Part shown: positions 19,251 to 59,030 of the stretch, piece after piece | Layout of the letters: each line of letters opens with the position of its first letter | Numbering within the stretch: the stretch's first letter is position 1 | NCBI GenBank assembly: GCA_950097015.1 | Contig: CATNEN010000033.1 | Location: forward strand, 5,208,001-5,272,000 | Length of the DNA stretch: 64,000 bases | From: Macrostomum hystrix | Lineage: Eukaryota; Animalia; Platyhelminthes | Direction: 5' to 3' | Notes under the pieces: generated by a model | Seen by the model: only the letters and a program-made list of their open reading frames with translations | Told to the model about the DNA's origin: nothing | Databases searched by the model: none | Position numbers and translations under genes: made by a program

Positions 19251-19862
19251 AATTTCTTAAGTGCTATCTGTTTTCACTAAATGCATTTTTAACTTTGCAA
19301 ACTTTAATGAAATGTATATTTGTTCATCTTGTCTGACTTGCATTTTTAACGCAATTATATCTGTATTTATATGATTTTGCTTAATTCGGCCTCTTACATT
19401 GTTTATATAATTTAAAATTTAAGCATTTGATCTCGCTTTTCTGCGAATTAATTCTGTAATTTTATTCTTTCATGTCGTCACCTCTCAAAGTGTGGAATCT
19501 TTCGAAAATATTGCCACACTGCTACTAATCGCGCATGCTTAAACTACTACTGTCATCCTCTCTCAGTAACATGTGCTGCGCATTTTTCTCGATAACTCCT
19601 TCTGTGGTACCGCTTTGCGCTGCTAAATTTTAAGTACAGAACATTGTGTTTCATGCCCATTTTTTGAAAAGCATTTTACGAATACTTAACATGGTAATCC
19701 TTGTACTTTTATTTACTTTGCACTGTGCCATGAAGACTAAAAAAGCGACAAATTTTTATTGGCCAGCGAGCCTCCGTTGCTTAAAAGCGCTTCCATTTAT
19801 CTTCGGTGCTTTCACCTAGCCATTCGAAATTTTGCGCAGTCGATGTTTTGGTCACCTGAATA

Positions 19863-20596
19863 GGGTGTATCAATAGGATCTGCAATCCTAGGCACAGGTG
19901 TATCAATAGGATCTGCAATCCTAGGCACAGGTGTATCAATAGGATCTGCAATCCTAGGCACGGGTGTATCAATAGGATCTGTAATCCTAGGCACAGGTGT
20001 ATCAATAGGATCTGCAATCCTAGGCACGGGTGTATCAATAGGATCTGCAATCCTAGGCACGGGTGTATCAATAGGATCTGCAATCCTAGGCACAGGTGTA
20101 TCAATAGGATCTGCAATCCTAGGCACAGGTGTATCAATAGGATCTGCAATCCTAGGCACAGGTGTATCAATAGGATCTGCAATCCTAGGCACAGGTGTAT
20201 CAATAGGATCTGCAATCCTAGGCACGGGTGTATCAATAGGATCTGCAATCCTAGGCACAGGTGTATCAATAGGATCTGCAATCCTAGGCACGGGTGTATC
20301 AATAGGATCTGTAATCCTAGGCACAGGTGTATCAATAGGATCTGCAATCCTAGGCACAGGTGTATCAATAGGATCTGCAATCCTAGGCACAGGTGTATCA
20401 ATAGGATCTGCAATCCTAGGCGCAGGTGTATCAATAGGATCTGCAATCCTAGGCACAGGTGTATCAATAGGATCTGCAATCCTAGGCGCAGGTGTATCAA
20501 TAGGATCTGCAATCCTAGGCACAGGTGTATCAATAGGATCTGCAATCCTAGGCACAGGTGTATCAATAGGATCTGCAATCCTAGGCACAGGTGTGA
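19863..20596. repeat. 33-bp minisatellite upstream of RPL35A
   Basis: gtgtatcaataggatctgcaatcctaggcacag, about 22 copies. Confidence 0.95.
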
Positions 20597-20672
20597 ATGA
20601 GCTTATATCTAAATTAAAGGCCCTCTAAAAACGCCGTCTTGCAGCAATAGCAACCCCAGCAGCAGCAGCGCA

Positions 20673-21056
20673 ATGTCTGCCGAACAGTCCGCCGCCAAGA
20701 AGTCGTTGAAGCTGCGGTCCCCTGGCCGCCTGTACGTGAAGGCCGTGTTCACCGGCTACAAGCGCGGCCTGCGCAACCAGCACGAAAACACCGCCCTGCT
20801 GCGCATCGATGGAGTCGAAAAGCGCGAGAATGTGGACTTTTACCTGGGCAAACGGTGCGCCTACGTCTACAAGGGCAAGCGGCAGACGCCTGTGCCCGGC
20901 AAGGGCAAGGAGAAGTCGCGAGTTCGCGTCATCTGGGGCCGGGTGACCCGGCCGCATGGCAACTCGGGCGCTGTGCGGGCCAAGTTCAACACGAACCTGC
21001 CGCCCGCCGCAATGGGCAAGCGAATCCGGGTCATGCTCTACCCGTCCCGTGTCTGA
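20673..21056 (+). CDS. RPL35A: 60S ribosomal protein L35a (eL33); CDS is a single exon
   Basis: [30 protein letters not shown]...[12 protein letters not shown]...[38 protein letters not shown]. Confidence 0.97.
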
Positions 21057-21250
21057 GCAGCCTATGACTTTGCATTGTTTGCTATCTGTCCTTGCTTTGG
21101 GCCCGCCTCGTGTGTTCTGACTGACTGGGTCTAAATATACTCTGTTTGCGTGTGCTGCAGCAAGGCAGTGGCATCACGCCTCTGTTGGCCTGTGCTGATC
21201 TGGAACTTGGATTAAAACTGCTTTTGTGCTCATTGTGGCATTCTTTTTCT

Positions 21251-22376
21251 TTGGGTAGCTGCTTTCCTCTGATTCTCCCTTGGGTAGCTGCTTTCCTCTG
21301 ATTCTCCACTTGGGTAGCTGCTTTCCTCTGATTCTCCACTTGGGTAGCTGCTTTCCTCTGATTCTCCACTTGGGTAGCTGCTTTCCTCTGATTCTCCACT
21401 TGGGTAGCTGCTTTCCTCTGATTCTCCACTTGGGTAGCTGCTTTCCTCTGATTCTCCACTTGGGTAGCTGCTTTCCTCTGATTCTCCACTTGGGTAGCTG
21501 CTTTCCTCTGATTCTCCACTTGGGTAGCTGCTTTCCCTCTGATTCTCCACTTGGGTAGCTGCTTTCCTCTGATTCTCCACTTGGGTAGCTGCTTTCCTCT
21601 GATTCTCCACTTGGGTAGCTGCTTTCCTCTGATTCTCCCTTGGGTAGCTGCTTTCCTCTGATTCTCCACTTGGGTAGCTGCTTTCCTCTGATTCTCCCTT
21701 GGGTAGCTGCTTTCCTCTGATTCTCCCTTGGGTAGCTGCTTTCCTCTGATTCTCCACTTGGGTAGCTGCTTTCCTCTGATTCTCCACTTGGGTAGCTGCT
21801 TTCCTCTGATTCTCCCTTGGGTAGCTGCTTTCCTCTGATTCTCCACTTGGGTAGCTGCTTTCCTCTGATTCTCCCTTGGGTAGCTGCTTTCCTCTGATTC
21901 TCCCTTGGGTAGCTGCTTTCCTCTGATTCTCCCTTGGGTAGCTGCTTTCCTCTGATTCTCCCTTGGGTAGCTGCTTTCCTCTGATTCTCCACTTGGGTAG
22001 CTGCTTTCCTCTGATTCTCCACTTGGGTAGCTGCTTTCCTCTGATTCTCCCTTGGGTAGCTGCTTTCCTCTGATTCTCCACTTGGGTAGCTGCTTTCCTC
22101 TGATTCTCCACTTGGGTAGCTGCTTTCCTCTGATTCTCCACTTGGGTAGCTGCTTTCCTCTGATTCTCCACTTGGGTAGCTGCTTTCCTCTGATTCTCCA
22201 CTTGGGTAGCTGCTTTCCTCTGATTCTCCACTTGGGTAGCTGCTTTCCTCTGATTCTCCACTTGGGTAGCTGCTTTCCTCTGATTCTCCACTTGGGTAGC
22301 TGCTTTCCTCTGATTCTCCCTTGGGTAGCTGCTTTTCCTCTGATTCTCCCTTGGGTAGCTGCTTTCCTCTGATTCT
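21251..22376. repeat. 29/30-bp minisatellite 3' of RPL35A (ttgggtagctgctttcctctgattctcc(a)c)
   Basis: Direct periodicity with two length variants. Confidence 0.95.
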
Positions 22377-22819
22377 ATTTCTCTCTGATTCTTTCTGTTC
22401 AGTCACGGCTCTTCCTATGCAACTTTAAAATGGTGACTAAGCCATTTTTAGAAACTTGTCGATTATCTTTTTACATCTTATGGGCTTTGTAAACTCTGTC
22501 ACGCGGCTTTCACAGCCACTTAGAATTTCCTTTTTAAACTACGATTTATTTCTCGCTTGTTGGGGCAAGCTTGACAATTTCCAAGTGCGTCAAATGTATC
22601 AGCATATTTATTTTCGTTGCATCCTTCATCCGTAGCAGATTATTTTCTCGCGTCAAAGTCATGAGCTAAACATCTGCGAAATAATCGGCTTTGACACATT
22701 TAGCACGAGTATGGCTAATACATGTTACATGTAGACACAAACGCATACACACTTGTAGATAATGTTGGTTACGATATACAATCGGCTGTAAATAAACACA
22801 CACATTTACATGAGGTTTG

Positions 22820-24881: not shown

Positions 24882-25905
24882 ATGCTGACTCTGCTGCTGT
24901 TGACTGCCTTCTGCTGTCTGGCAACTTCAGAGAACGACTGCAGCGTGAGTTTGTGGGGAGCAATCTTAACTTTCGAAATTGCGACTCTCTTTAGAGAGAT
25001 TCTCCTTGGTGCGATTCTCCTTGGTGCGATTCTCCTTGGGGCGATTCTCCTTGGGGCGATTCTCCTTTTCTTCGAGCGATTCTTCTAATTGGAGCGGTTC
25101 CACTAGGTGCGTCTCTCCTTGGTGCCGATTTTCTTTAGGGCTTGGAGCGATTCTCATTCGAGCGATTCGTGGGACGATTCTCCTTGGTACGATTCTCCTT
25201 GGTGCGATTCCCCTTGGGGCAACTCTAGTTGGGCCGATTCTCCTAGGGCCGATTCTCTTTAGGCCGATTCTCCTTGGGGCAACTCGCCTTGGGCCGATTC
25301 TCATTTGGGCAACTCTCCTTGGGGCAACTCGCCTTGGGCCGATTCTCATTTGGGCAACTCTCCTTGGGGCAACTCGCCTTGGGCCGATTCTCATTTGGGC
25401 AACTCTCCTTGGGGCGATTCTCCCTTGGCTTAGAGCTATTTTCCTTGGGGCGATTCTCTTCGATTCCTTGGGCCGATTCTCTTTGGGCTGATTCTTCTTG
25501 TGGCTTGGAGCGATTCTTCTTGAAAGCCAAGATTCCGACCCGCACAGTTTCCAGTATCGGTCGCTCCGGTTTCAGAATCCAGGGCTGTGTCATGTGGGGT
25601 CACCAGGGAAGCAGGAAGCGAAGAGTGACTCTCGTTTCTGTGCTCTGTGCGCGATGGAACTGATTGCTGGTTTAGCGGGGCCCGCTGCTAGGAGATGCAG
25701 ATAAATATTTCTTTAGACAAACAAGCAGTTATCAAGTGATAGCGAGCCAGATGACAGATAAAACATGCGAATCGGCACAGCCGCCACAAAACACCGCAAA
25801 CACAGCCGCGCAGTGAGCTTTGTAAACTGTGCGAACAAAGTTTCAGAATTTCACTTGTGCAACAATCATCTATCAGGAAAAGTAAAGGAAATGAATTAAC
25901 AGCAC

Positions 25906-25984
<79 letters not shown>

Positions 25985-28900
25985 CGTTAGGTTCGCCAGC
26001 ATCGTTAGGTGTGCATTTGTAAATGCATTATCCTGTCTGTGCGTATTGGCATGCAAAGAACCATACTGACAATGAGTGTAGGGCCTCTGACTAGCTTTTA
26101 TTTTTAACAATATCAAGCCCACCGACTCGTGCTTTGTTTGTGGGAATTTTTCCCCGTTCAAGAAGTTCAGCTCCAATTTCTAAAGTGAATAGTTCAGTCT
26201 GCTTCCCAGTGTTTACAATCGGCACAATGGGGCTCAACAGCCCCCCACTTGCATCCGGGTCCTGGCTGGGACGCGAATTTTTTTTAAAAAGGTCTTGGCT
26301 AATTAGAGCGAGTCAGTGGGACAATACTCGCACATACTATCATAGCTAGCTAATGGAAAGAAACTCTCAAATTCTTGTGCACCTGTCTGTTCACAATGCG
26401 CTGGTTTATGGTCAACAAATTCGGATCCCTAATTATTGAGCAATTGGACTGAAAGCGAATCACAATGAGATGAGGAGGCGTTCGAAGTTTCGCCAAGATG
26501 TGCTCAGATTTTGCACCCACTTCGTGTCTAAATGTGGGCTGTGGCCTGTTGGCCGAGGAATAAAGAATAGGAATGGGAGAGAAGGGAGAAGGAATGGGAT
26601 AAAGAGGAGAAGGAATGGGATAGAGGGGAGAAGGAATGGGATAAAGAGGAGAAGGAATGGGATAGAGGGGAGAAGGAATGGGATAAAGGGGAGAAGGAAT
26701 GGGATAAAGGGGAGAAGGAATGGGATAAAGGCGAGAAGGAATGGGATAGAGGGGAGAAGGAATGGGATAGAGGGGAGTAGGAATGGGACAGAGGGGAGTA
26801 GGAATGGGACAGAGGGGAAAAAGAATCGGACAGAGTGGATTAGGAATGGGATAAAGGGGAGAAGGGATGGGAGAGAAGGGAGAAGGAATGGGATAGAGGG
26901 GAGAAGGAATGGGATAGAGGGGAGTAGGAATGGGATAGAGGGGAGTAGGAATGGGATAGAGGGGAGTAGGAATGGGACAGAGGGGAAAAAGAATCGGACA
27001 GAGTGGATTAGGAATGGGATAAAGGGGAGAAGGGATGGGAGAGAAGGGAGAAGGAATGGGATAGAGGGGAGTAGGAATGGGATAGAGGGGAGTAGGAATG
27101 GGATAGAGGGGAGTAGGAATGGGACAGAGGGGAAAAAGAATCGGACAGAGTGGATTAGGAATGGGATAAAGGGGAGAAGGAATGGGATAGAGGGGAGTAG
27201 GAATGGGATAGAGGGGAGTAGGAATGGGATAGAGGGGAGTAGGAATGGGACAGAGGGGAAAAAGAATCGGACAGAGTGGATTAGGAATGGGATAAAGGGG
27301 AGAAGGGATGGGAGAGAAGGGAGAAGGAATGGGATAGAGGGGGGAAGGAATCGGATAGAGGGGAGTAGGAATGGGATGGAGGGGAGTAGGAATGGGATGG
27401 AGGGGAGTAGGAATGGGATGGAGGGGAGTAGGAATCGGATAGAGGGGAGAAGGAATGGGATGGAGGGGAGTAGGAATGGGATAGAGGGGAGTAGGAATGG
27501 GATAGAGGGGAGTAGGAATGGGATAGAGGGGAGTAGGAATGGGATAGAGGGGAGAAGGAATGGGATAGAGGGGAGAAGGAATGGATAGAGGGGAGTAGGA
27601 ATGGGATAGAGGGGAGTAGGAATGGGATAGAGGGGAGTAGGAATGGGATAGAGGGGAGTAGGAATGGGGTAGAGGGGAGTAGGAATGGGATGGAGGGGAG
27701 AAGGAATGGGATAGAGGGGAGTAGGAATGGGATAGAGGGGAGTAGGAATGGGATAGAGGGGAGAAGGAATGGGATAGAGGGGAGAAGGAATCGGATAGAG
27801 GGGAGTAGGAATGGGATAGAGGGGAGTAGGAATGGGGTAGAGGGGAGTAGGAATGGGGTAGAGGGGAAAAGGAATGGGATAGAGGGGAAAAGGAATGGGG
27901 TAGAGGGGAGTAGGAATGGGATGAAGGGGAGTAGGAATGGGATGGAGGGGAGTAGGAATGGGATAGAGGGGAAAAGGAATGGGGTAGAGGGGAAAAGGAA
28001 TGGGGTAGAGGGAGTAGGAATGGGATGGAGGGGAGTAGGAATGGGATAGAGGGGAAAAGGAATGGGGTAGAGGGGAGTAGGAATGGGATAGAGGGGAAAA
28101 GGAATGGGTTAGAGGGGAAAAAGGAATGGGGTAGAGGGGAGTAGGAATGGGGTAGAGGGGAGTAGAATGGGATAGAGGGGAGTAGGAATGGGATAGAGGG
28201 GAAAAGGAATGGGGTAGAGGGGAGTAGGAATGGGATGAAGGGGAGTAGGAATGGGATGGAGGGGAGTAGGAATGGGATAGAGGGGAGTAGGAATGGGATA
28301 GAGGGGAGTAGGAATGGGATAGAGGGGAGTAGGAATGGGATAGAGGGGAGTAGGAATGGGATAGAGGGGAGAAGGAATGGGATAGAGGGGAGTAGGAATG
28401 GGATAGAGGGGGAGTAGGAATGGGATGGAGGGGGAGTAGGAATGGGATAGAGGGAGTAGGAATGGGATAGAGGGGAGTAGGAATGGGATAGAGGGGAGAA
28501 GAATGGGATAGATGGGGAGAAGGAATGGGATAGAGGGGAGTAGGAATGGGATAGAGGGGAGTAGGAATGGGATAGAGGGGAGTAGGAATGGGATAGAGGG
28601 GAGAAGGAATGGGATAGAGGGGAGAAGGAATCGGATAGAGGGGAGTAGGAATGGGATAGAAGGGGAGTAGGAATGGGATAGAGGGGAGTAGGAATGGGAT
28701 AGAGGGGAGAAGGAATGGGATAGAGGGGAGTAGGAATGGGATAGAGGGGAGTAGGAATGGGATAGAGGGGAGTAGGAATGGGATAGAGGGGAGTAGGAAA
28801 TGGGATAGAGGGGAGAAGGAATGGGATAGAGGGGAGAAGGAATGGGATAGAGGGGAGTAGGAATGGGGTAGAGGGGAGTAGGAATGGGGTAGAGGGGAGT

Positions 28901-31900
28901 AGGAATGGGGTAGAGGGGAAAAGGAATGGGGGTAGAGGGGAGAAGGAATGGGATAGAGGGGAGAAGGAATGGGATAGAGGGGAGTAGGAATGGGATAGAG
29001 GGGAGTAGGAATGGATAGAGGGGAGTAGGAATGGGATAGAGGGGAGTAGGAATGGGATAGAGGGGAGTAGGAATGGGATAGAGGGGAGTAGGAATGGGAT
29101 AGAGGGGTGAAGGAATGGGATAGAGGGGAGTAGGAATGGGATAGAGGGGAAAAGGAATGGATAGAGGGGAGAAGGAATCGGATAGAGGGGAGTAGGAATG
29201 GGATAGAGGGGAGAAGGAATCGGATAGAGGGGAGTAGGAATGGGATAGAGGGGAGTAGGAATGGGATAGAGGGGAAAAGGAATGGGATAGAGGGGAGTAG
29301 GAATGGGATAGAGGGGAGTAGGAATGGGATTAGAGGGGAAAAGGAATGGGATAGAGGGGAGTAGGAATCGGATAGAGGGGAGTAGGAATGGGATAGAGGG
29401 GAGAAGGAATGGATAGAGGGGAGTAGGAATGGGATAGAGGGGAGTAGGAATGGGATAGAGGGGAGTAGGAATGGGATAGAGGGGAAAAGGAATGGGATAG
29501 AGGGGAGTAGGAATGGGATAGAGGGAGAAGGAATCGGATAGAGGGGAGTAGGAATGGGATAGAGGGGTGAAGGAATGGGATAGAGGGGAGTAGGAATGGG
29601 ATAGAAGGGGAGTAGGAATGGGATAGAGGGGAGTAGGAATGGGATAGAGGGGAGAAGGAATGGGATAGAGGGGAGTAGGAATGGGATAGAGGGGAGAAGG
29701 AATCGGATAGAGGGGAGTAGGAATGGGGTAGAGGGGAGTAGGAATGGGGTAGAGGGGAAAAGGAATGGGATAGAGGGGAGTAGGAATGGGATGGAGGGGA
29801 GTAGGAATGGGATGAAGGGGAGTAGGAATGGGATAGAGGGGAGTAGGAATGGGGTAGAGGGGAAAAGGAATGGGATAGAGGGGAGTAGGAATGGGATTGA
29901 GGGGAGTAGGAATGGGATAGAGGGGAGTAGGAATGGGATAGAGGGGAGAAGGAATGGGATAGAGGGGAGAAGGAATCGGATAGAGGGGAGTAGGAATGGG
30001 ATAGAGGGGAGTAGGAATGGGATAGAGGGGAGTAGGAATGGGATAGAGGGGAGAAGGAATGGGATAGAGGGGAGTAGGAATGGGATAGAGGGGAGTAGGA
30101 ATGGGATAGAGGGGAGTAGGAATGGGATAGAGGGGAGTAGGAATGGGATAGAGGGGAGAAGGAATGGGATAGAGGGGAGAAGGAATGGGATAGAGGGGAG
30201 TAGGAATGGGGTAGAGGGGAGTAGGAATGGGGTAGAGGGGAGTAGGAATGGGTAGAGGGGAAAAGGAATGGGGTAGAGGGGAGAAGGAATGGGATAGAGG
30301 GGAGAAGGAATGGGATAGAGGGGAGTAGGAATGGGATAGAGGGGAGAAGGAATGGGATAGAGGGGAGAAGGAATCGGATAGAGGGGAGTAGGAATGGGAT
30401 AGAGGGGAGTAGGAATGGGATAGAGGGGAGTAGGAATGGGATAGAGGGGAGAAGGAATGGGATAGAGGGGAGTAGGAATGGGATAGAGGGGAGTAGGAAT
30501 GGGATAGAGGGGAGTAGGAATGGGATAGAGGGGAGTAGGAATGGGATAGAGGGGAGAAGGAATGGGATAGAGGGGAGTAGGAATGGGATAGAGGGGAGTA
30601 GGAATGGGGTAGAGGGGAGTAGGAATGGGGTAGAGGGGAGTAGGAATGGGGTAGAGGGGAAAAGGAATGGGGTAGAGGGGAGAAGGAATGGGATAGAGGG
30701 GAGAAGGAATGGGATAGAGGGGAGTAGGAATGGGATAGAGGGGAGTAGGAATGGGATAGAGGGGAGTAGGAATGGGATAGAGGGGAGTAGGAATGGGATA
30801 GAGGGGAGTAGGAATGGGATAGAGGGGAGTAGGAATGGGATAGAGGGGAGTAGGAATGGGATAGAGGGGTGAAGGAATGGGATAGAGGGGAGTAGGAATG
30901 GGATAGAGGGGAAAAGGAATGGGATAGAGGGGAGAAGGAATCGGATAGAGGGGAGTAGGAATGGGATAGAGGGGAGAAGGAATCGGATAGAGGGGAGTAG
31001 GAATGGGATCGAGGGGAGTAGGAATGGGATAGAGGGGAGAAGGAATGGGATAGAGGGGAGTAGGAATGGGATAGAGGGGAGTAGGAATGGGATAGAGGGG
31101 AAAAGGAATGGGATAGAGGGGAGTAGGAATCGGATAGAGGGGAGTAGGAATGGGATAGAGGGGAGAAGGAATGGGATAGAGGGGAGTAGGAATGGGATAG
31201 AGGGGAGTAGGAATGGGATAGAGGGGAGTAGGAATGGGATAGAGGGGAAAAGGAATGGGATAGAGGGGAGTAGGAATGGGATAGAGGGGAGAAGGAATCG
31301 GATAGAGGGGAGTAGGAATGGGATAGAGGGGAGTAGGAATGGGATAGAGGGGAGTAGGAATGGGATAGAGGGGAGTAGGAATGGGATAGAGGGGAGTAGG
31401 AATGGGATAGAGGGGAGAAGGAATGGGATAGAGGGGAGTAGGAATCGGATAGAGGGGAGTAGGAATGGGATAGAGGGGAGTAGGAATGGGATAGAGGGGA
31501 GTAGGAATGGGATAGAGGGGAGTAGGAATGGGATAGAGGGGAGTAGGAATGGGATAGAGGGGAGAAGGAATGGGATAGAGGGGAGTAGGAATGGGATAGA
31601 GGGGAGAAGGAATCGGATAGAGGGGAGTAGGAATGGGGTAAGAGGGGAGTAGGAATGGGGTAGAGGGGAAAAGGAATGGGATAGAGGGGAGTAGGAATGG
31701 GATGGAGGGGAGTAGGAATGGGATGAAGGGGAGTAGGAATGGGATAGAGGGGAGTAGGAATGGGGTAGAGGGGAAAAGGAATGGGATAGAGGGGAGTAGG
31801 AATGGGATTGAGGGGAGTAGGAATGGGATGGAGGGGAGTAGGAATGGGATAGAGGGGAGAAGGAATGGGATAGAGGGGAGAAGGAATGGATAGAGGGGAG

Positions 31901-33292
31901 AAGGAATGGGATGAAGGGGAGTAGGAATGGGATAGAGGGGAGAAGGAATGGGATAGAGGGGAGAAGGAATGGGAGAGAGGACACCAACCAACCAACAACG
32001 CCCCTGAATCGCCCTTTCCTGACCGCAGGTGAATAGTGTCTCATCGAACTGCTCATTCCAAAATGACTGCTCAGTGCTGAGCGGCAGTGTGTCAGGTAGG
32101 CGATTCTTTTAGCCATTTCTAATTGAGTATTTTGTGGAAGGCAAGCTGGTAAATTAAAGAAATATTCGCAGCATGCACTGAGAGTAGCGTGTATTGCGTA
32201 TTGTGTTAAGTTTATTACATAATGGTGACTTCTCTCATTATCCGAAGAGTGCACCTACTGCCTGGCAGCCAAGGATTCGAAATCTGCCAGCCCGCTGACC
32301 TCCACGCTCTTGAATAGAAGCGGTGGGGGCCATCTCAGCTGGACTACAATGGACCTGGACCTCGGCAGCATCGAGTCCACCGACTGCCTGGCTGTGAAGC
32401 TCATCGAATATATTAAATTTGCGCAAGAGAAAGGCTCCGTCAAACTGTTCAACCTGTGCGGCTTGCCACGGCGAAGCAGCCGGCTGCTGCGGCTGAAGCT
32501 GCTGCTGAAATTCGATGCCTCACGATCGGCCTCGGTGGCGGTTCTCACCGAGAAGTTCCACCGGCAGCGTCTGTGCAACCAGTCCGTGTGCGTCAGGCGA
32601 GCTCACCTCAGGCTGCTCGGCTCTCCTCCTGAGCCCAAAAGCTGCCCTCGTCCAGATCGGCTTCGACAACGTCAGCTGCCTGAGCAGGTCGAGCGACAGC
32701 GTCTGCAGCGGTCTCACGGTCGGCCAGCTCGGCTGCGGCTCGGCCCGCTTCGAGCTGAACTTCGACCAGAGCCATGAATACGCCGAGGTGGGCATTCAGG
32801 GCGGCGGAACCAATCAGGTGAGTTCGGCTGCTCACTGGCCACATTGAATTATCAAACCAGCGAGCTGTTATAACAAAAATAATAAACCGAATCTCCACCT
32901 AGACTGCCGGCTGGGTGATCAAACAGGACGTGAGCATGATGCCTCCAAGCAGAGGAAAAAAGGATTACATCATTTTCAAAGTTGAGAAGGTGAGTAGCGC
33001 TTTGTAGCGAGTCTCTAGTTACCATGGTTACCATAAGGCTTATTAACTAAAAACGGCACACAACATTTAGACTTTTTTTTTAATCCTTCAGTACAAAAAA
33101 GTTTACTGGCTCGCCGACGATGACATGTCGAATAACTTCGAGCACAACCTGCTGAATGCCGTCGGCTACGCTGTCGCGGACGCCTGTCCCGAGACTGACC
33201 CAGCGGACACTGCGACCACGGCAAAACTACTGACGGCGCAGAATATGGGTTCCGATTTCTCTCCACTGACCCTGCCTCTGATTTCAGTGCTG

Positions 33293-33329
<37 letters not shown>

Positions 33330-33829
33330 GGCTACTTCCTCCGGCGTCGATGTCGTCAACGCGGCCTCCGCTGCTGCTCATCGCGGCTTCCGCGGAGCTT
33401 CTTCGACACAGGGCGGCCGTCCAGCTGCGCAGCCGCCTGCAAGGCCGCTGCCGCCTGCGCATCCTGCGTGCCGGCCTGAGCCAACTCGCCCCCGGCATGG
33501 CCCGCTCCTGCCAGCTGCTGCTCTTGCTCAGCACCGACGCCAGCTTCGGCGACTTCCGCCTCGATGAGTGCCCCTCCGAGCAGGCCAGACGCGAACTCCT
33601 GACCGTCCTGCACACTGAGCGGCACCGGATCTGGCGGCTGCACCTCGGCGACGGCGGGCCGAGCCTCGGTGACCCGTCGGCGCAGCTGGGGCCGGCAGCC
33701 GATGACAGGCTCGTGCGGCTGGACGACTCGGCCGAGTTGGCGGCCAAGCGGCTGATCGGCGAGCTGCTGCAGCCGCTGCGGGCCGTCTGCCCTGCGGAGT
33801 TGAGCTCAGGGCTGGGGTTTTTTGTGTGA
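24882..33829 (+). CDS. Putative IL-17-receptor-like type I membrane protein with a SEFIR/TIR-like cytoplasmic domain (exons 24882-24944, 32029-32095, 32248-32591, 32656-32817, 32903-32989, 33092-33829; about 486 aa)
   Basis: Signal peptide MLTLLLLTAFCCLATS; phase-consistent GT-AG chain; Cys-containing ectodomain (NCSFQNDC...HLSWTTMDLDLGSI); Leu-rich TM; tail LLLIAASAELLRHRAAVQLRSRLQGRC.L.IL...SCQLLLLLS. The exon1-exon2 link spans 7 kb and the 32592-32655 intron boundaries are inferred; an in-frame ATG at 24825 is an alternative start. Confidence 0.6.
24985..25520. repeat. Degenerate 15-bp minisatellite (gcgattctccttggg) in receptor intron 1
   Basis: Direct periodicity starting shortly after the donor at 24945. 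Confidence 0.85.
25905..25982. repeat. (ATCT)n microsatellite
   Basis: Perfect tetranucleotide run. Confidence 0.95.
26571..31980. repeat. 5.4-kb purine-rich 21-bp satellite (ggaatgggatagaggggagta), intronic
   Basis: About 250 units; + strand almost free of C; ends about 50 bp before the acceptor at 32028. Confidence 0.97.
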
Positions 33830-36170: not shown

Positions 36171-36481
36171 TAGAGTATTTGTGAAGTGACCTCTAGAAAA
36201 GCTGTTCTAAAAAAGAAATAATTAAAAAACACATATAGTAGGCAAAGTGGTTTTGTTACTATATGGCAATGAATGGGCAGGTTGAGCCAAGATATTAGAA
36301 ATATACAAGTCAATTCTCTCCGTGGGCAAAATTGATTGCAGTTTTGGGAAACTACTCGTAGATTGCAAAAAGGTATATTTTTGCTTTTATTTTCACTCTG
36401 GATATGAAAGCTAGCTCGTAATATTGAAAATAAAGTTTTGTATTGTCTATGGCTGCTGGGGGGTTAACCAATTGTAGCTGG

Positions 36482-37283
36482 TCAGCCAGAGCCGCTGCGA
36501 TTGGCTGGGACGGCGCAGGACACTCCGAGCCTCGCGAAGCCAAGCTCCAAGTTGCCGTAGTCCACGGTCTTGAGCACCCAGATGGGCATCTGGACTGGCT
36601 CCTGTTCTGGACACGGACAGCGGACATCCGGCATCAGCCGCGGCAAGCCGTTCGTCATCGGCGTTGATAACGAAGTTCGGCTGCGACTGGAGCTTGCTGA
36701 ACTTGCTGTTGCAGCTGAACTGCTGGTAAAGATAGCTGCCGCAGCCCAGCATGGCGTTGATGCTCTGCAGGTCCGCGGCCGTCAGGCGCTCCGGCGGCGA
36801 CGGTGCCGATCGATTGTGCAGAGTCACGCAGCCGACATCAAAGAGCTCAGTTCTCAGCTCCAGCTTCGTACCGTTGCCCACAGCAGCAAAAAATGAAGCA
36901 GGCAGGCGGGCCTTCCGGCAGTCCAGCAGCAGCTCGGAGGCCATTTTCTTGATGGCGCTCCGGTTGCATCGGCACTCCGACTGCAGGCGCTTAGCGGGCA
37001 GCGCTGCGGGCAGGCCGAACGCGGTCGTCAAGTTGACTTCAGAGAAATAGTCGTAACAGACCCGTTCTCTATTCTCATCTGGGTCTTGGTCCTGGTTGTA
37101 CATCGAGTCGTGGCTTTGATCGCACTTTCTGTCAATCACGGCATACGGTGTGGTCTCACTTAATGCGCCCCAGCCGCAGATTTTCTCAGCGGGGACATGG
37201 CGCAGCTCCGCAGTCAGCAGCAGAAGCGGCAGCAGCAGCAGCGGCAGCGGCAGCAGCAGCGGAAACTTTAAAGTTGCAGACAT
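36482..37283 (-). CDS. Secreted tandem (two-domain) IL-17-like protein A; intronless, 266 aa after removing one extra base near 36645
   Basis: Signal peptide (LLLPLPLLLLPLLLLTA); domain 1 ...QSECRC...DC...FDVGCVTL; domain 2 PNFVINADDER(L)PRLMPDVRCPC...VQMPIWVLK...RLGVSCAV (last part in the shifted frame, stop at 36482). Confidence 0.65.
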
Positions 37284-37799
37284 TGTGGGCAGTTCTTGCA
37301 GATGGCAATGCTGCATCTGTGTCTTATGAAAACTGGTTCAGTACCGTAGATTGAAAACCGCAGACTCGCATGCATGATATTTATATTGATTATTTTGTAC
37401 AGTCGTGTCATTAGCGGGTGGAACTTCCTGAATATTAGTAACTCTCACTTTCCATAACTGCTAAATAAAGCCCACAGTGTCACATTTCTAGATGAGGCAT
37501 CATTTTAGCGGCTGTGGCTGCGGCTGAGTGAAAGGTGTGAACAGATATTGCGGCCCTTAGAAGAACAAAGTACTTCCGCAACTTAAAACATTTTGCCTTA
37601 TTTTAAGCTAAACATTAAATAGAAAGAAAATGTAAGACATTTAGTCACGGAAAAGGATTTCATTGTATGATTCGATTGCTAAAATTAATTTTGCAGCTAA
37701 AAACAGATTTCAGTGTTAACCACTTTTTTGGCTATTCGAAATTAACCTCGACACTAAAAAAATGTTTCTAATCTAATCAGTAAAGCGTGCTAAAGACTA

Positions 37800-38032: not shown

Positions 38033-38910
<878 letters not shown>

Positions 38911-47471: not shown

Positions 47472-49558
47472 TCTTAATAAATATATTTTTAATGAGGCTT
47501 CTGTGAATTCTGACAATCCTACGTGCACCTTTTAATTAGCGTTTTTGCATATTTAACTGATATTACTATAAATAAAAATGCGCAGTTCAAGCCGTAGAAA
47601 TACGAAAATCGAACTAAATACGCTTCTAGAAATTAGGGCTTTGGCTACAATGAAAATAAAAAGGACGTATAAAATGCAAGTTAAAGCAAGGGATCAAACT
47701 TAAAGTAATACAAGTTAATTCGTTTTTACAGTCGGATAAAAATGAATACCGTTTAAATGTATTTTTTAAGGAACTTCATAGCCCTCCAGTTTTGCCTCTG
47801 AAAAAATAATTTTTTTTTTTGTTTAAATTGGGATCATCGTTGGAATTCCGCGTGTTCCGTGTGAAGGGGTGGACAGAAACTTCTTACGCTATTCATTATC
47901 ACAATTAACACGGGTCTTTACCTTCTAATAAGGTCATTGAAGAGCCAGCTTTTATTTCAAAATAGTATAACTTTACAATGTGTTCCTCAATTTAGTTGCT
48001 TTTTTGTATTTGCTGCTGTATCCTTATTGTCAGCAATTGTTGCAGACCTCTTTCGTTATACTATTATATTTTACTTAATAATATTAATACTGCATTAATA
48101 TTCTCTTATTTATTTATCTAATAACTCCAGTCACTTGTCCGTGACTCAGTTAGGCATCATACACACCCTTCTAGCTGGTCGAACAAACTATTCTGATAGT
48201 TTGGGTAGCGTGGCGTTTCTACACGATAGATTCTGGCCTCTTGCAAGTGGTTTTCTAGATTCTGGATCTAGCTTTATTTCTAGAGATATCAACCTCTGAG
48301 TGCTTCTGAATACTTCAGATATGTCAGGCTCTCTGTCCTTCTCGGGCTTTCCCCGGATCGGTGTTAACAGCTTTCACTCACTCAGAAATATGTATAATTA
48401 GGCTTTGGAATATGCTCACGAAGAGACTTAAACTGTTTAAGCTTCCAATTTACTGGTTGGCCCAACGGTTAGCTTCCTATATAAAACCCCCTCTATATTT
48501 ATACTAAAATCCTATTGAATACTCCCAGTATATTTTAGTGGCGTAAAACAAATATTATCTATAGATATTTGTAGCACATAAAATAATATATAAAAATATT
48601 TCGCGCGCTAGTTTGATTTGACCAATTAGGCCCTTTTACACAATGTTGACAGTGTCAGCGATTAATTAGTCGAGATGAAATGGGATCGAGTAAAATAATC
48701 CATGCTCGAATAGGTACGCGGCCGAACTGTCTATTATACAAAGTCGAGTGTAACATATTTTAAAACAAAAATGTTTTTTTTTAATACACTACACTTATAG
48801 CTATTATATTTAATTTGTGCTCGGAGTGCATTAAGAGCTATTAAATTAGCTTAAACACTCGGACAAATTTTGTTCACTTAATAACAATTGTGAAGGATTT
48901 AATAGATTTAATAGAGGCAAAACTATTTCTCTTGCATTATCTTAAGAGTTATAAAGACCACACATCATGATGCATCAGTCCATCAACATTGCATATAATG
49001 AATTAATTTTATAGTTACACATCTGAGCGTATGTTGCTGTATGATCAATGGCGCGTTCGTCCATGCAACGTATGAATACAAAATGTATTCTTGCTAAATG
49101 ATTAATTGTTGGCACTGTAAAGTAATCGCTGCTAACTGTGCGTAAACAGAACTGGCCAAATATAGGTCTCGACGATATGTTGATCAAATTGAATATACAT
49201 CTGCTACTACGAGTATAATAATATAAGGAAGCCATTGATAAAATTAACAGAATGCTGAATTATAGATTTGTCAAGCCATGTGTTAAAGTTGTTCCTTAAT
49301 TTACATGTTTCCCGTGTGCTGCTGGTTTAGGGCAGCCAACAATAAAACCTTGTTGCCGGCATAACAAATTTAGTCACTTCCAATACACTCATTAAGCGTG
49401 CAAGAGTCAATGCTAAATTAGTCTAAACGGTCGCTTCTGTGGCAGCCGACCAGCAGGCTACAGACGCATAAATACAAGTGAACTGTCACAGGAATCACCA
49501 GCAAAGGTGTTTAAGAACTAAATTTGTCCGTTAGTAGAGAAAACTAGCTTAGTTTGCT

Positions 49559-50369
49559 ATGACGATGCGGCCTTACATACTGCTGGTCCAGCTGCTGCGG
49601 CCGCTGCTGCTGTTGCTGCAGGCTTGGCCGAGCAGTTGTTATCGAGTCGATGAATATCACGCATGCGGCTGGGGTGTCAACAGCAAAAACCTGACCTTCG
49701 CCGCTTATTCAGGTGTGGCATATACCCAGCCTGAAGCTTGCGAGACCAGCAGCATGGGCGAGACCAAGCAGGACTACCCAGACATCCCAACTGACAACAG
49801 GAGACGCCTGTGCCCGGACCTGTTCTGGCCAATCGAGAATCCTGCGCCAACGCTGCCACGGCTGCGCTACGAGTCCGGCTGCCAGTGCAACACGAGCCAG
49901 AACCCGGAGCTAAACCTGCACATGCAGTGCCGGACCTTCCAGCTGCCCGTGGCTTCTCTGGAGCCCGTTGGAAACAGCTCGACTCTCCGGCTGGTAACTC
50001 GACTGATGGGCGTCGGCTGCGCCGCCCTGCTCAGCCTACCGCGGTCTCGCCGGAGCCCGGAGCCGCTAACTGGCAGCGACCTGCGCCGCCTCAATGCCAT
50101 GCTGGGCTGCGGTCGCTCCGTCTACCAGCCCGTCAGCTGCAGCGCCATCGCCAACCAGTCGCAGCCGGCGTTCGTGATCAACGCTGATGACGACCGGGTG
50201 CCGCGGCTGCTGCCGGACGTTCGCTGCCCGTGCGACGGCCAGGAGCTGGTGAAGTTGCCGCTCTGGGTTCTCAAGCAAAAGAAAGACGGGCAGCATGGTG
50301 CAGGAAATCGCTAGTGTTGGGGTGTCTTGTGCAGTTTGTGTAACGTGGAAGCTGCTTTGCTCACTCTGA
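49559..50369 (+). CDS. Secreted tandem (two-domain) IL-17-like protein B; intronless, 269 aa after removing one extra A near 50282
   Basis: Signal peptide; domain 1 RLCP...LPRLRYESGCQC...QCRTF...MGVGCAA; domain 2 PAFVINADDDRVPRLLPDVRCPC..LVKLPLWVLK..(shifted frame)SMVQEIASVGVSCAV; clear paralog of 36482-37283. Confidence 0.68.
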
Positions 50370-51004
50370 CACATTTCATTGCAGCTGGGTCAATGCAGCT
50401 TAATAAATGTACATTCAAGAGCATCATGCTTACCTGTAAATTTCATACATGTTTTTCTTCATTCTTCTATATATATATTATAACCGATTACCTTTTATCT
50501 GAGATGTGTATCACGCATGTACTCGAAATCATTATAAATATTATATTCTTTTGTTCATGATCGCATTCAAAACTGCGAGGTTTTTTAGTCAAACTTTCAA
50601 TAGAGAATACCTTGATGGCGATGCTTTTAACTGGCTTGTTTCATTAAGAAATACCGATTAATACGGTGTTGCAGAGAGCGGTATAACGTGTGCGCCTCTC
50701 GCACCAAGGTCCCTGTGAGAGATACAATTCAGACTACTGACAACAGTAGAAAAGCAAAGACTTGGCTGCAAAACTCTCACATAACACTAAAAAAGTATTG
50801 CCATAAAATAGCAAGGTTAAATGAGACTTTTGTGCACACTAAGAGTGGTGTGCACACTAAGAGTGGTGGGAGAGGGACTGTGTGTGGCTATGGCTGACTG
50901 ACGAAGGCAAACAAGCCAGAGACCTGTCTCGGTCTGCCAGTGCGAGGTTCGTTCCCCACTTTTAGTGTGTTACAGTCCCTGAGCTAGATATTACGCTTCG
51001 AGGC

Positions 51005-53514: not shown

Positions 53515-56500
53515 TCACTGGTAGTGGGAGTACCGCTTCCTTGGCACAAAGCCATACTTGTTAGGCTTACGCGGTGCCTCCCTGCGATTCGCGACAGGTG
53601 TCGGACCTGCTGGCTCATTGATGACTGTAGGCTTTCTTGGCCGAAGGTTGTACTGCACCTCTCGCCACTGAAGTGGTGCTGCCGTTCCACTGGCTACATC
53701 CGGTCGGTCCTCAGCCTCCTCCTCACAGGCTGGTTCCTCCACAACATCATGGTCTGGTGGTTCAGCTTCAGGTTCTTCTTCGTTATCTTCTTCCGACTCT
53801 TCTAACTCTTCCTCCGTTTCCGTTTCAGAATCTTCGATAAGTTCTGCCGAACTTCCGGAATCTGTGTCAGAGTCTTCATCAGTTTCTTCAATCTCACTTC
53901 CACTTATGTCTGTCTCTTTGCAAGCTCTCCATTGAATTCTTTCCTCTTCTGAGTCAGAGCTTTCTTCTTGCTCGATTTCTTGAACTGCCTTTTTCAGAAT
54001 CTTAGGTTGCACTTCCTTTCTTTTCTGGATCTTCTGGGCAGTCTCCTGCCTTCCCTTATCTGTTGGTTCTCTCTTCTCCATGTCAGAACTTTCGGGCATG
54101 CCCGTGGCTTTGACCGAGTTCGGTACAGGAGTCAGATTATTCCGGTGTACCAGCATCATGGCACCGATTAGTTTTCCATTCTCCTCTTTCTGGACTCTGA
54201 AAACTGTGTCCGAAAGCTTAGCCAACACTCTGTAAGAGGCTCTCTTCTTTCGGTGAAATTTATTGCTCTCGTCACCATGCAACTGTGAATTGTTTATCAA
54301 TACGAGACCGCCGATTGGCACGGCCTTGGTGATCACTGTCTCAGCAGCCTGCTCCCCGACGGTCTCGCACCTTTTCTAATTTCTTCTGAACCACCTTCTG
54401 CATCTCCTCAATTCTTTTAGCATGATCAGCTACATAGCTAGGATAGTCGTAGTACAATCTGGGCCTTTTGACAACACTGTCTATTGGCAACTCCGCCTCA
54501 CGTCCGAACAATAGATAATGTGGAGTGAATCCTGTTGTCTGATTTACACTCGTTCGAACAGCCACTAAAGCTGCTGGGATCAACAGGTCCCAGTCGGAGT
54601 GGTCTTTCTCAACTAGACAGGTGATGATGGACTTTATCTGACGGTTAAATCTTTCTACAAGGCCGTTGCTTTGCGCATGATATGGCGTCGTGCAGGTATG
54701 CTTGATACCATACAATGTACAAAACGCCTGGAACTGACGGCTCACAAAAGTTTTCCCGTTGTCAGTGTGGATCCAACGGCACTGACCATACTCGCTAAAA
54801 ATTCTTTCTTGTAGGAGTTTTATGACTGTGTCCGACTTTTGATTTCTGATTGGAAATGCAAACGGGAACTTAGTAGTGCTGTCGATGACTGTCAGCACGT
54901 ACTTGTGTCCTCGTCGGCTTTCTTTAGAAATCGGCCCAATCAGATCAATGTGTAGGCGATGGAATGCCTCGCACACAGGAAATGTTTGCACCGGTGCCTT
55001 CACCTTATTGCCTGCTTTACTCTCGAGGCATGGGATGCACTCGGCCACATAATTCTCTACAGTAGTAACTAGGCCAGGTTTCCAGAATCGCTCTCGTACC
55101 TTTTGTACGGTTTTATCTCGTCCAAGATGTCCTGCTAAAGGACTGTCATGCAATTCTCGGAGGACCTCTTTTTCTATTCCACTCGGAAGTACTACTTTCC
55201 GGGTACCGTCAGTCACGATGGTTAACATTCCATCCTCAATCTTCATCTGCTCGTATGATTTGATCATCTTTTTCAGCTCGTGGCTAGCCCCTGTGGGTAA
55301 TTCTGGCCTCAGTATTCCTTGTTCCTTCCACTCAATCAGGATTTTAACGTCCTGATCCTCTCTCTGTGCAATAACCAGCTGTTCCTTCGTCAGTGGTACT
55401 GACAGGAAATCTGTTAATAATTTTCGGCATGCCGTTGTCTCTTCCAATTCCTCATCTTCGAAATAGTCTCTTGCGTCCACGAAAATTTCATTCGCATCAT
55501 CATCATCTGTATCGATGCCACTGTCTGTCTGACAGCTCTGACTCATCATGGCTCGTCCAGTGATTTGACTTTGGTTAATCTTTGCTTCAGAAGCCTCTTT
55601 AATTTCCGATGGTCTTCTAGACAAGCTGTCTGCATTGCTATGCTTAGCTCCGCTTCTATGCTGGATCTCGTACTGAAACTCACTCAACCGTTCGATCCAC
55701 CTTCCTAAAATACCCTGGGCTTCTGTTTGACGTAGTAGCCACAGGATCGCTTTGTGGTCGGTACGTGCCAAGAACTTCTTCCGATCAAATAGAATCGGAA
55801 GTGTTTCATACCATCCACCAAGGCGAGCAATTCCTTTCGTGTTATCGGATATCGTTTTTCAGATTCCGTCATTGCCCTGCTGAAATAGGCGATTGGTCTT
55901 TCTACTCCATCTGCCTGGATTTGTCCAAGACAGGCTCCTATCCTTCCTTCGGATGCATCAGTGTCTAACACCATTTTGACATTTTCATATTCTGAAAATT
56001 CGGGATAAGCCAACACATCGGTGGACATCATTTTCTGTTTTAGAAGTGCAAACGCCTCGTCATGTTTCGAGTTCCATTTCTCCTTAAAGTTCGTTATACC
56101 CTTTTTGGTTAACTGAAACAGCGGATGCGCTGCTTCGGCATAGTCCTTAACGAATCTACAATAGTAGTTGCATAGGCCCAAGAAACTTCTTAATTCCTTG
56201 ACGTCTTGCGGAGTAGGCCATGATCGGATGGCTTCGATTTTGGCCGGATCTGTTCGAATTCCATTTCGGCCTACTATGTGGCCTAGATATTTCAGTTCTT
56301 CTTGAAACAGATTACATTTTCTTGGTCTCAATTTCAGTCCAGCTTCGGATAATCTCCGGAACACTTCTCGTAGGTGACACAGATGTTCATCGAATTCCTT
56401 CGAGTAAGTAACGATATCGTCGATGTACGACATCGCGAACTTGTGTTGAATGCCGATCAACACAAGGTTCATCAACCTCTGGAAGGTTCCAGGTGCATTT

Positions 56501-58130
56501 GACAAGCCTTGAGCCATTACTTGGTACTCAAACTGGCCCCTAGTTAATGTCGAGAATGCCGTCATATGTTTGTGTTCTTCTTTAATTGGGACTTGCCAGT
56601 ATCCAGAGTTAAGGTCTAAACTGCTGAAATACTGACTTCCAGTAAGGTGAGAGAATGTCTCCTGAATATTAGGTAACGGATACGGATAGTACTCCACACG
56701 AGAATTCAGTACTCGAAAGTCACTCACGATCCTTATTGTACCATCCTTCTTTGGTACTATGACCAAGGGTGTCGAATAGGTGCTATAACATGGCCTAATC
56801 AGGTTTTTGGCCAGCATGTCATCAAGCAAATCATCCACCTGTTTTTGCAAATGAGGCGGAATTCTGCGAGTCGGTATTCTGACTGGCGTAGTATCTTTAA
56901 GAGCAATTTCATGCGTCACCAAATGTGTCAGACCCATATCTTGCTCGGTCTGAGAGAACGCTGCTCTGTTCTCTTTCAGCAATTGTATAACTTGTTCCTT
57001 TTGTTTCCGAATTCATCTCTCCGATGTTAACCTCCTTGATCCATTCATCAATGTCCTTTGAGGCTTCCTCTCTCTTTACAGCATTGACTTGTCCGGTATT
57101 TTGACTCGAATTGATTGAATTAACAAAATAATTCAAGTTCTTCGCTGTTAATGGCTTGGCATAGCCAATAAGAGCTGCTCCTTTCACTTTGACTTCTCTG
57201 TTCTGTTTATTGACTAGTTCTATGACTCCAACTCCTTCGTTCAAGGTTACTAATGCTGGTACTAGCTCCAGATCATAACCTTTGGCTGCAATATAGCCGT
57301 CATTAGTCTCAATCACCATGGGAGTACCGTAATTAGCTTCGGCATTTTCTCCCAATCGGATTGGCACTTTCAAAGCACTATTCGCTGGTATCGTGATCTG
57401 ATTCTGGCAATAGACTCGTCGAATTCGAACAGGTAGTCTTGTGAACTGAATTGGGATGCAGATCCCATCTTTCAGTACCAAGACTCCTTTACTGAAATTG
57501 ATACCATCACAGTAGTCTGTGAGAAAGTCCATTCCAAGGATGTCGTCACAGTCGTGGTCACACAGAAGAAATCTTGTCTCAATCTCAATTTCTCCGAACT
57601 TCACTTTAAGCATTGCTTCACCTCTAAGTGACACAACTGTTCCGTCAAACGTGGTGACTCTCAAATTGCATGGTTCTATCTCGTCGTCCACAAACCACTC
57701 TCTTCCATGAACTCCTACTTAAGAAGTTGTTTCCGGCTCCTGTGTCTATCAAAAACATAATATCTCGCTTTCGTATCTTTCCATTCACAATTGCTTCCTG
57801 ACCTTTCTTGACCGGCTCTGGGATTCTGATCGTCTCAATGGGTGACTCACTTTTAATTTCTTTGCTAGCGGCTTTCTGACCTGTTTCACATGGTGTAACT
57901 GGTGCTTTCGCATGTGCTTGCATTTTTGCAGTGCTGGGTGCATACGCATGGTGCTGTCTCATTTCTTGCGGCTGATTAAACTTGTTGAAATAATAATTAT
58001 TTTTCTTGTAAGCAAAACGTTGGTTATCAATTTTATACGCACTATTTACAAACTCTGAGGCCTGGAATTTGTTAAAGGATTTTCCGGAGGAACGGGGCCT
58101 CGACTTACGTCCCTCGTATTTTAGTTTCCC
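53515..58130 (-). CDS. pol: Pol polyprotein (protease, RT, RNase H, integrase, acidic tail), broken by four single-base indels
   Basis: FLIDTGA; SSLDLNSGYWQV, QGLSNAPGTFQR, YIDD; LDTDAS; HDSPLAGHLG..CIPC, HIDL, TDNG, NGLVERFN. Confidence 0.93.
58057..58130 (-). promoter_or_regulatory. Predicted -1 ribosomal frameshift signal (G GGA AAC plus pseudoknot)
   Basis: The heptamer directly precedes the gag TAA; the -1 frame stays open into the protease; 8-bp stem 8 nt downstream. Confidence 0.75.
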
Positions 58131-59030
58131 TGGTTCTGGAAGTTCTGCTGACCGTTGCCCATCCTCATAGGACAGAATCTGGCAATATGGCCGAGTTTTC
58201 CGCAGTTGAAGCAGGTTCGGTTCTGGTTCAAGAATTGCGGCCCATTGTACTGCGTATTCTGCTGTTGCAGGAACTTAGGTACATATGGCTTCCTTGGTAC
58301 GTACTGTTTCTCAGCCATTTTGCTGGTGAGCTCCTGCAAGAGTTTCTGCTGTCTTTCAATTTCTTCCTTCTGCTTCACAATTGTTGCCCTTAGAGACTCC
58401 TCTTCCTCTTCACCATTTCTGGTAATCCTTACTCCGGCACCTTTGTGTGTCATGCTCCAGGCGGCTTCCAACCTTCTAAGCATTCTCTTTAGTTCCTGTA
58501 GATTGGCAGGCTGAGCAAAGATTAGTTTCTCCCTCATGTCAGCGGATATCTTGGCTCCCTTGATGTATTGCTCAACCAGTTCATCTTCTCGTTGCTCCAT
58601 TGTCATGTTTGGGAAGGCTCTGGCAGCCAGTTCAATCAGACTATCTGAATAGGCTTCTACCGATTCATTCTTGCCTTGCATTCTTCCTCGAAACTCTTCT
58701 CTGAATTCTGCTGGGCTTCCAGTTCGTCCGAATCTTTCTGCCATCCGCTCCTTGAATTCTTCGTAGTCAAGGTTTTTCTGGGAGGTTCATTCTCTGTACA
58801 GAGGCAAATACTGTGGACAAGTCCAAGTTGGCAAGCAATTCCTGCTTTCGATGGTCCACATCAATTCCTTCTGTCTCGCATCTTTGATCAAATGCGGTGA
58901 GCCACACCCGAATATCCTGATTAGGTGTGAACTTTTGGATCTTCACATGGCGTGTTGGAGCAATCTCCAACCGATTTCTCAGCTCTTCCGCGAGTACAGC
59001 CATCAAATCTTGTACTTGAGCTTGATCCAT
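58121..59030 (-). CDS. gag: Gag with a CCHC zinc knuckle; one extra A near 58770
   Basis: KFTPNQDIRVWLTAFD..., ESVEAYSDSL, CFNCGKLGHIARFC. Confidence 0.88.

Follow-up and report, generated by a model that had tools for sequence, protein, structure and literature searches.

Gene B, which lies at 49559-50349 on the + strand of the window (the whole 64,000-nucleotide stretch of DNA analyzed here), is probably an intact, intronless Macrostomum gene encoding a secreted protein of 262 amino acids with two IL-17-fold domains, the early TAG in the assembly being due to the insertion of two G residues. The two domains would form a pseudo-dimer and may be separated by cleavage. The protein is predicted to begin with a signal peptide, followed by two divergent IL-17-fold domains (domain 1 and domain 2) that a proline-rich linker of 29 residues connects.

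As assembled, the gene was read from the ORF list and the sequence as an intron-free frame of 251 aa (49559-50314, + strand) closed by TAG at 50312-50314. An in-frame stop lies immediately 5' of the ATG. By inspection, the protein starts with a hydrophobic stretch rich in Leu that would direct the product into the secretory pathway. The gene and its parts were placed as follows.

49559..50349, + strand: true coding sequence of gene B; 789 nt after subtraction of the two surplus G's, 262 codons plus TGA, intron-free.
49559..49636, + strand: probable signal peptide, aa 1-26, whose Leu-rich core is specified by a CTG/GCT repeat (sequence read by eye; AF2 helix at 5-22).
49790..50032, + strand: core of IL-17-like domain 1, aa 78-158, running from an RLCP motif through GCQC to GVGC.
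50021..50107, + strand: inter-domain linker, aa 155-183 (Cys154 to Cys184), placed by the three-paralog alignment and of low pLDDT in both models.
50054..50345, + strand: IL-17-like domain 2, aa 166-262; the C-terminal strand hidden by the assembly belongs to it.
50402..50407, + strand: AATAAA, a likely polyadenylation signal 53 nt 3' of the true stop, read from the sequence only; the contig of run X1 ends at 50488.

The coding sequence was defined from a second genomic copy of gene B on contig C10, which is 99% identical to the window and holds an uninterrupted 262-aa ORF (L002:1521-2309, - strand); the read contigs concur. With both G's dropped, the frame of gene B continues through ...LKQKKDGSMVQEIASVGVSCAVCVT to a stop at t(50346) g a(50349), giving 262 aa, the length of the C10 ORF, and the true protein ends in ...KKDGSMVQEIASVGVSCAVCVT. 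In the window as assembled, TGSMVQEIASVGVSCAVCVTWKLLCSL is the translation of the + strand frame of 50286-50369, which is closed by a stop at 50367-50369.

Contigs of four public runs (X1, X2, X8 and X9, from three studies) were aligned to 49400-50500. Such contigs are evidence of presence, not of absence, rare variants being dropped. Together with the C10 copy they located two surplus bases in the contig that carries the window (C33).

50288..50290, + strand: surplus G, the first frame break; GGG in the window versus GG in X1, X2, X8 and the C10 copy.
50347..50348, + strand: surplus G that masks the true TGA; GG in the window versus G in X1, X2, X9 and the C10 copy.

The first G was missing in all three runs covering 50288 and the second in all three covering 50347. 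The sequence-only reading had restored the frame by deleting one A in aagcaaaagaaag, near 50282. That position was wrong, as the run contigs and the C10 copy put an extra G at 50288-50290, and a single-base repair overlooked the second insertion at 50347-50348; a one-A deletion is thus ruled out. The KK-TGS junction which it produced becomes KKDGS in the corrected frame. From its proposed C-terminal extension the GVSCAV strand survives, carried by the other frame, while the WKLLCSL tail and the end at 50369 are artefacts. The TAG at 50312, which the same reading had allowed might be the true stop, is out of frame in every covering run. An intron or a programmed frameshift was also ruled out; the frames abut with no room for an intron, and the contigs are simply without the bases. 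The restored strand goes beyond chance, V255, C257 and A258 being invariant in three two-domain paralogs and the V and C of the last strand invariant across nine IL-17-like domains of the genome.

The C33 and C10 copies of gene B differ by three substitutions (49599, 49990 and 50096) and the two G indels, with no other defect. The contig of run X2 is of the C10 type and is not independent of that copy. A 725-nt contig of run X1, by contrast, has zero substitutions relative to the window over 727 positions (49762-50488), including the window alleles at 49990 and 50096, two of the SNPs that separate C33 from C10, yet lacks both G's. The window haplotype therefore exists without the insertions. 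In the adjacent paralog A, the frame break in the window is a surplus T (TT versus T at 36646), which is absent from the C10 copy, where the ORF of 277 aa is intact. The indels specific to the window, three in genes A and B together (TT, GGG and GG), are thus all +1 homopolymer insertions relative to C10. An insertion of this kind is the typical consensus error of long-read assemblies. Since all three breaks are such events on one contig, consensus error is the simplest reading, and the early TAG in gene B is most likely to be explained by errors in the consensus of C33.

It is very unlikely that gene B on C33 is a genuine frameshifted pseudogene allele of the assembled animal, with the C10 copy alone functional. 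C33 as assembled does have two insertions in B and one in A, and a mutation private to that animal could be lost from public contigs that report presence, not absence, and drop rare variants. However, the X1 contig matches the C33 alleles without either insertion, the breaks are all of the homopolymer +1 type, and apart from the indels the C33 copy is only three substitutions from C10 and otherwise undamaged. Read as consensus errors, the indels amount to about 1 per 500 bp of genes A and B on C33, and reads should be checked for other "frameshifted" genes of this genome before these are called pseudogenes or recoded genes.

The extents of the public contigs, none of them from a run recorded as RNA, were suggestive of transcription. 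Run X1, whose contigs total 43 Mb versus a 220-Mb genome and are transcriptome-like, had zero depth over 49400-49510, and its two contigs jointly span 49537-50488. The contigs of X8 and X9 start at 49545 and 49522, respectively. Run X2 gave even coverage across the whole of 49400-50500 and by its size looks like genomic DNA. The CTG/GCT repeat at 49585-49621 draws contigs from many unrelated loci (depth up to 38,000 versus 70 alongside); because these pile up there, depth and variant calls within the repeat are meaningless.

Two other kinds of sequence were recorded around the gene. A Ty3/gypsy-type retrotransposon (53515-58744, - strand) lies 3 kb downstream of gene B; judged by eye from the ORF list, its gag (CCHC), protease, reverse-transcriptase and integrase ORFs are open. 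Long satellite arrays of short period occupy 19781-22406 and 26350-32254, and because several of their frames are open, spurious ORFs as long as 1882 aa result.

Two IL-17-like domains in one gene B chain had been proposed from the sequence, and profiles, the match between the domains and the model of domain 2 all agree with this. Formal membership in the Pfam IL17 family (PF06083) was not reached. The window ORF scored 19.1 bits (E 0.0018, best stretch aa 99-155), under the 24-bit gathering threshold, as did the intact 262-aa protein (17.6 bits) and domain 2 alone (13.3 bits); every two-domain member was sub-threshold, and no family other than IL17 scored at all in the Pfam scan of gene B. 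Alignment of nine IL-17-like domains of the genome, among them two classical IL-17 domains, gave the invariant series C (of the CP motif), P, C, P, V, C. Searched against 177,635 PDB sequences, the profile of this alignment matched only IL-17A, IL-17F and IL-25 (best E 0.0035). The profile of domain 1 with the single-domain relative D matched only eight IL-17A sequences (E about 0.8), and the domain-2 profile alone gave zero matches among the PDB sequences. Domain 1 aligns with this relative (L020). The two domains of gene B are about 25% identical and were aligned by hhalign over 65 columns (E 3.5e-4, probability 37%) with the Cys, LP and GV.CA positions in register. The cysteines invariant across the nine domains are those of the CP motif, of the inner strand and of the last strand. 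Whereas the IL-17 family is marked by C-x4-C with C-x-C and by an invertebrate third pair at the CPW motif, the candidate knot cysteines in B are spaced as C-x-C on the inner strand, with one Cys only on the last strand of domain 1.

Domain 2 was modelled by AF2 from the nine-domain alignment with a pLDDT of 73.5, reaching 80-94 in the hairpins and core, and the corrected C-terminal strand falls inside a confidently modelled hairpin. The top 50 Foldseek matches of this model were all IL-17A, IL-17F or IL-25 (E 2e-3 to 9e-3, TM about 0.5). VIA-align returned structures of the same three cytokines only, human IL-17A at Z 7.5 and an rmsd of 3.2 A over 67 residues; a Z below 8 is middling, and the classical IL-17 domains in the alignment may bias the fold. 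Within this model, domain 2 has the predicted IL-17 fold, with two long beta-hairpins joined at the cystine-knot end. The full-length AF2 model, built from three sequences, had a pLDDT of 38.9 and is unusable for packing, linker exposure or disulfides. Gene B is classed as an IL-17-fold protein that falls short of formal Pfam membership.

Broader protein searches were silent. A word-index search with the intact gene B protein gave zero matches, and a profile of the A, B and C alignment gave a single match among 1.84 billion representatives, a 601-aa HYR-type repeat protein hit in six stretches and judged spurious. Both libraries apparently are without this genus and failed to return the query itself, and their silence says nothing about orthologues in other flatworms.

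The family might instead comprise cystine-knot hormones or neurotrophin-like factors, comparable to crustacean female sex hormone (CFSH), PTTH and Spaetzle, that share the fold without being immune cytokines, in which case convertase cleavage, if any, would serve to process a prohormone. The language-model neighbours of B come from IL17, NGF and Spaetzle clusters alike (0.88), a lead-level observation, and CFSH and PTTH are reported to bind IL-17 receptors, so that the pathways intertwine (PMC11087794). A search of the genome for Pfam SEFIR found no match, a result that counts as uninformative, and the neighbouring candidate receptor ORFs had no Pfam support: the ORFs at 24979-25488, 32310-32774, 33125-33826 and 38036-38743 gave no match, nor did an IL-17R-like receptor at 24882-33829 receive any. 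Against this, all profile and structure matches in the PDB were to IL-17A, IL-17F and IL-25, with zero to NGF and zero to Spaetzle. We consider the hormone-like role unlikely; it concerns role and not fold, and is compatible with gene B being an IL-17-fold protein. Two of the ORFs, 33125-33829 (+ strand) and 38033-38743 (- strand), flank paralog A and share, in inverted orientation, a nearly identical stretch of about 100 aa that runs from ...QLAPGM.RSCQLLL to ...GPAADDRL; neither ORF has a Pfam match.

Protein searches of the genome (G000) found two copies of paralog A, two of B, one further two-domain paralog (C), the relative D and two classical IL-17 genes.

36482..37283, - strand (window ORF 36447-37316): paralog A, 44% identical to B and with the same two-domain plan.
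L010:1204-2052, G000:C33:4495985-4496746: paralog C, two-domain, 27% identical to B, 254-282 aa, frame intact.
L020:1483-1980 (G000:C30): relative D, single-domain, 165 aa, with a C-terminal GVGCAFIAD that resembles the domain ends of A, B and C.
L018 and L019, G000:C38:1165061-1181847: two classical IL-17 genes, 16 kb apart on opposite strands.

Paralog C lies on the same contig as the window genes, about 760 kb upstream. One of the classical genes exceeded the Pfam cut-off, at 32.8 bits, and the L019 protein has R-R-L-R-N-R directly before its CP motif. The family appears to be small and lineage-specific, with the two-domain A, B and C and a single-domain relative that shares their terminal GVGCA motif. 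An IL-17 domain of the invertebrate type probably gave rise to it through duplication in tandem and fusion.

Paralogs A and C resemble B in having a signal peptide, domain 1, linker and domain 2, and the three proteins have ten cysteines in common, the domain-1 half contributing six and the domain-2 half four. A and B have two further cysteines, C36 and C184, one per half, without equivalents in C; another two, C27 and C260, again one per half, occur in B only. Such coupled presence and absence is the pattern expected of inter-domain disulfides and, among three paralogs, hints weakly at them: C36-C184 in A and B and C27-C260 in B may bridge the two halves. The two domains would pack like the protomers of an IL-17 dimer, forming a built-in 1:1 pseudo-heterodimer.

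The linker of gene B reads LSLPRSRRSPEP and contains one candidate cleavage site.

50042..50053, + strand: RSRR, aa 162-165, the minimal furin/proprotein-convertase motif, with Ser at P1', Pro at P2' and Pro at P5.

The P1, P2 and P4 positions are all Arg, and the motif is the sole R-X-[KR]-R in the protein, eight residues past Cys154, where the cysteines of domain 1 end, and nineteen ahead of Cys184, the first in domain 2. When the mature protein was shuffled 100,000 times, R-X-[KR]-R occurred anywhere in 12% of the shuffles and within the linker in 1.3%. The sequence-only reading had set this motif against the LHNRSAPSPP of paralog A, which has no such site, and both were read as described at matching positions. 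Conservation, which it had proposed as a check, was found only in sequences about 99% identical to the window, namely the C10 copy and a contig of organism C (run X9, 49977-50198), in both of which RSRR is unchanged; the contig of run X8 (organism B) covers a region that excludes the site. R-X-R-R is absent from the linkers of paralogs A (N-R-S-A-P) and C (E-S-H-G), so by parsimony the motif is a novelty of the B lineage. In A, an N-R-S glycosylation sequon occupies the exact position of RSRR, and A and B may therefore differ at the linker by a glycan versus a cut. The site falls in a proline-flanked linker, the least confidently modelled stretch, within a full-length model that is unreliable (pLDDT 38.9). 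Other basic pairs in B are RRR at 82-84, RR at 176-177 and KK at 241-242. RRR 82-84 was rejected as a pro-peptide site since a cut there would lose the conserved Cys61; it looks structural, an R-x-R before the CP motif recurring in the classical IL-17 domains of the genome.

Convertases are encoded in this genome: thirteen P-domain matches above the cut-off were found at at least six loci, and one ORF (L014), with an S8 pro-domain, Peptidase_S8 and a P domain, gives an E of 5e-146 against mammalian furin. A furin-like convertase of the secretory pathway would cut R-S-R-R/S-P (slash, cut) to give two chains that stay associated, while A, with its N-glycan sequon at that place, and C would stay single-chain. 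The chances that RSRR of B is cut by such an enzyme are judged slightly below even. The proposal of a two-chain heterodimer for B versus a single-chain A was partly supported; its basis is a four-residue motif conserved in close copies only. In its fullest form, B would be matured as a two-chain hormone, with RSRR cut, the two IL-17-fold chains held by the inter-domain disulfides C36-C184 and C27-C260, the latter a B-specific staple joining the N-terminus of chain 1 to the C-terminus of chain 2, and the site and the Cys pair gained together. This combination is rather doubtful. If true, B would be the first IL-17-fold ligand in which proteolysis of a single gene product yields an obligate heterodimer, and the uncleaved A and C would be its natural controls.

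An evenly balanced alternative is that B remains a single chain like A and C, RSRR being a neutral or chance basic patch, or a site shielded by burial or by glycans on the Ser/Thr/Pro-rich linker and never cut. The motif is not in the paralogs and is kept solely in 99%-identical sequences, and chance would supply it in 12% of mature shuffles, in 1.3% within the linker and in about 4% family-wise over the three paralogs. Dibasic pairs, moreover, are common in B (RRR 82-84, RR 176-177 and KK 241-242), and the full-length model that would show exposure of the linker has a pLDDT of 38.9. The placement of the site speaks for cleavage instead, exactly between the domains, flanked by prolines and in the least confidently modelled stretch, as do Arg at P1, P2 and P4 with Ser at P1' in a genome that has furin-like enzymes; in addition, an exposed site that harmed such a secreted protein would be expected to have been purged.

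The precursors of NGF and of BMP4/TGF-beta carry R-S-[KR]-R/S upstream of their cystine-knot domain, and the pieces can stay associated; the furin site of BMP4 is R-S-K-R/S-P and that of NGF is R-S-K-R/S-S. What lies N-terminal to the cut in those precursors is a pro-domain with a different fold, whereas both pieces of B would be of the cytokine fold. Among invertebrates, CFSH is an IL-17-domain precursor in which a dibasic convertase site is processed (PMC6056722). B resembles it as an invertebrate IL-17-domain precursor with a convertase site, putative in the case of B. Cleavage at the KR site of CFSH, unlike that proposed for the linker site of B, detaches a precursor-related peptide from the N-terminal side of a lone IL-17 domain and does not split two such domains apart. 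For sea urchin, gene models that encode two or three IL-17 domains (SPU_022838.1 and SPU_019350.1) have been reported (PMC4517768). Those models were exceptions in a survey of tandem arrays and were possibly fused, whereas gene B is one uninterrupted exon and single contigs span its linker.

Flatworms and furin are unmentioned in two papers on IL-17 evolution (PMC11087794 and PMC8353272), and nothing relevant was found in the literature on IL-17 ligands with Macrostomum, planarian or flatworm. Since papers on flatworm IL-17 ligands were not found, the gene family described here adds to the map of the IL-17 pathway in Lophotrochozoa. Paralogs differing in a convertase site would show activation logic diversifying within a cytokine family. 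Two different IL-17-fold domains hard-wired in one chain would constitute a natural single-chain heterodimer.

IL-17 cytokines act as dimers, and the choice of AA, FF or AF alters receptor use. In the vertebrate IL-17A and IL-17F dimers (PDB 4hr9, 1jpy and 5n92) each protomer has the two beta-hairpins and knot with which domain 2 of B was modelled. The Cys pattern of B departs from theirs, with C-x-C on the inner strand and, in domain 1, one Cys only on the last strand. In the vertebrate cytokines the two chains are made separately, from the same gene or from two genes, and no convertase is involved, whereas the domains of B are fused in one ORF. Where IL-17A and IL-17F need two protomers side by side, the two-domain chain of B would supply both.
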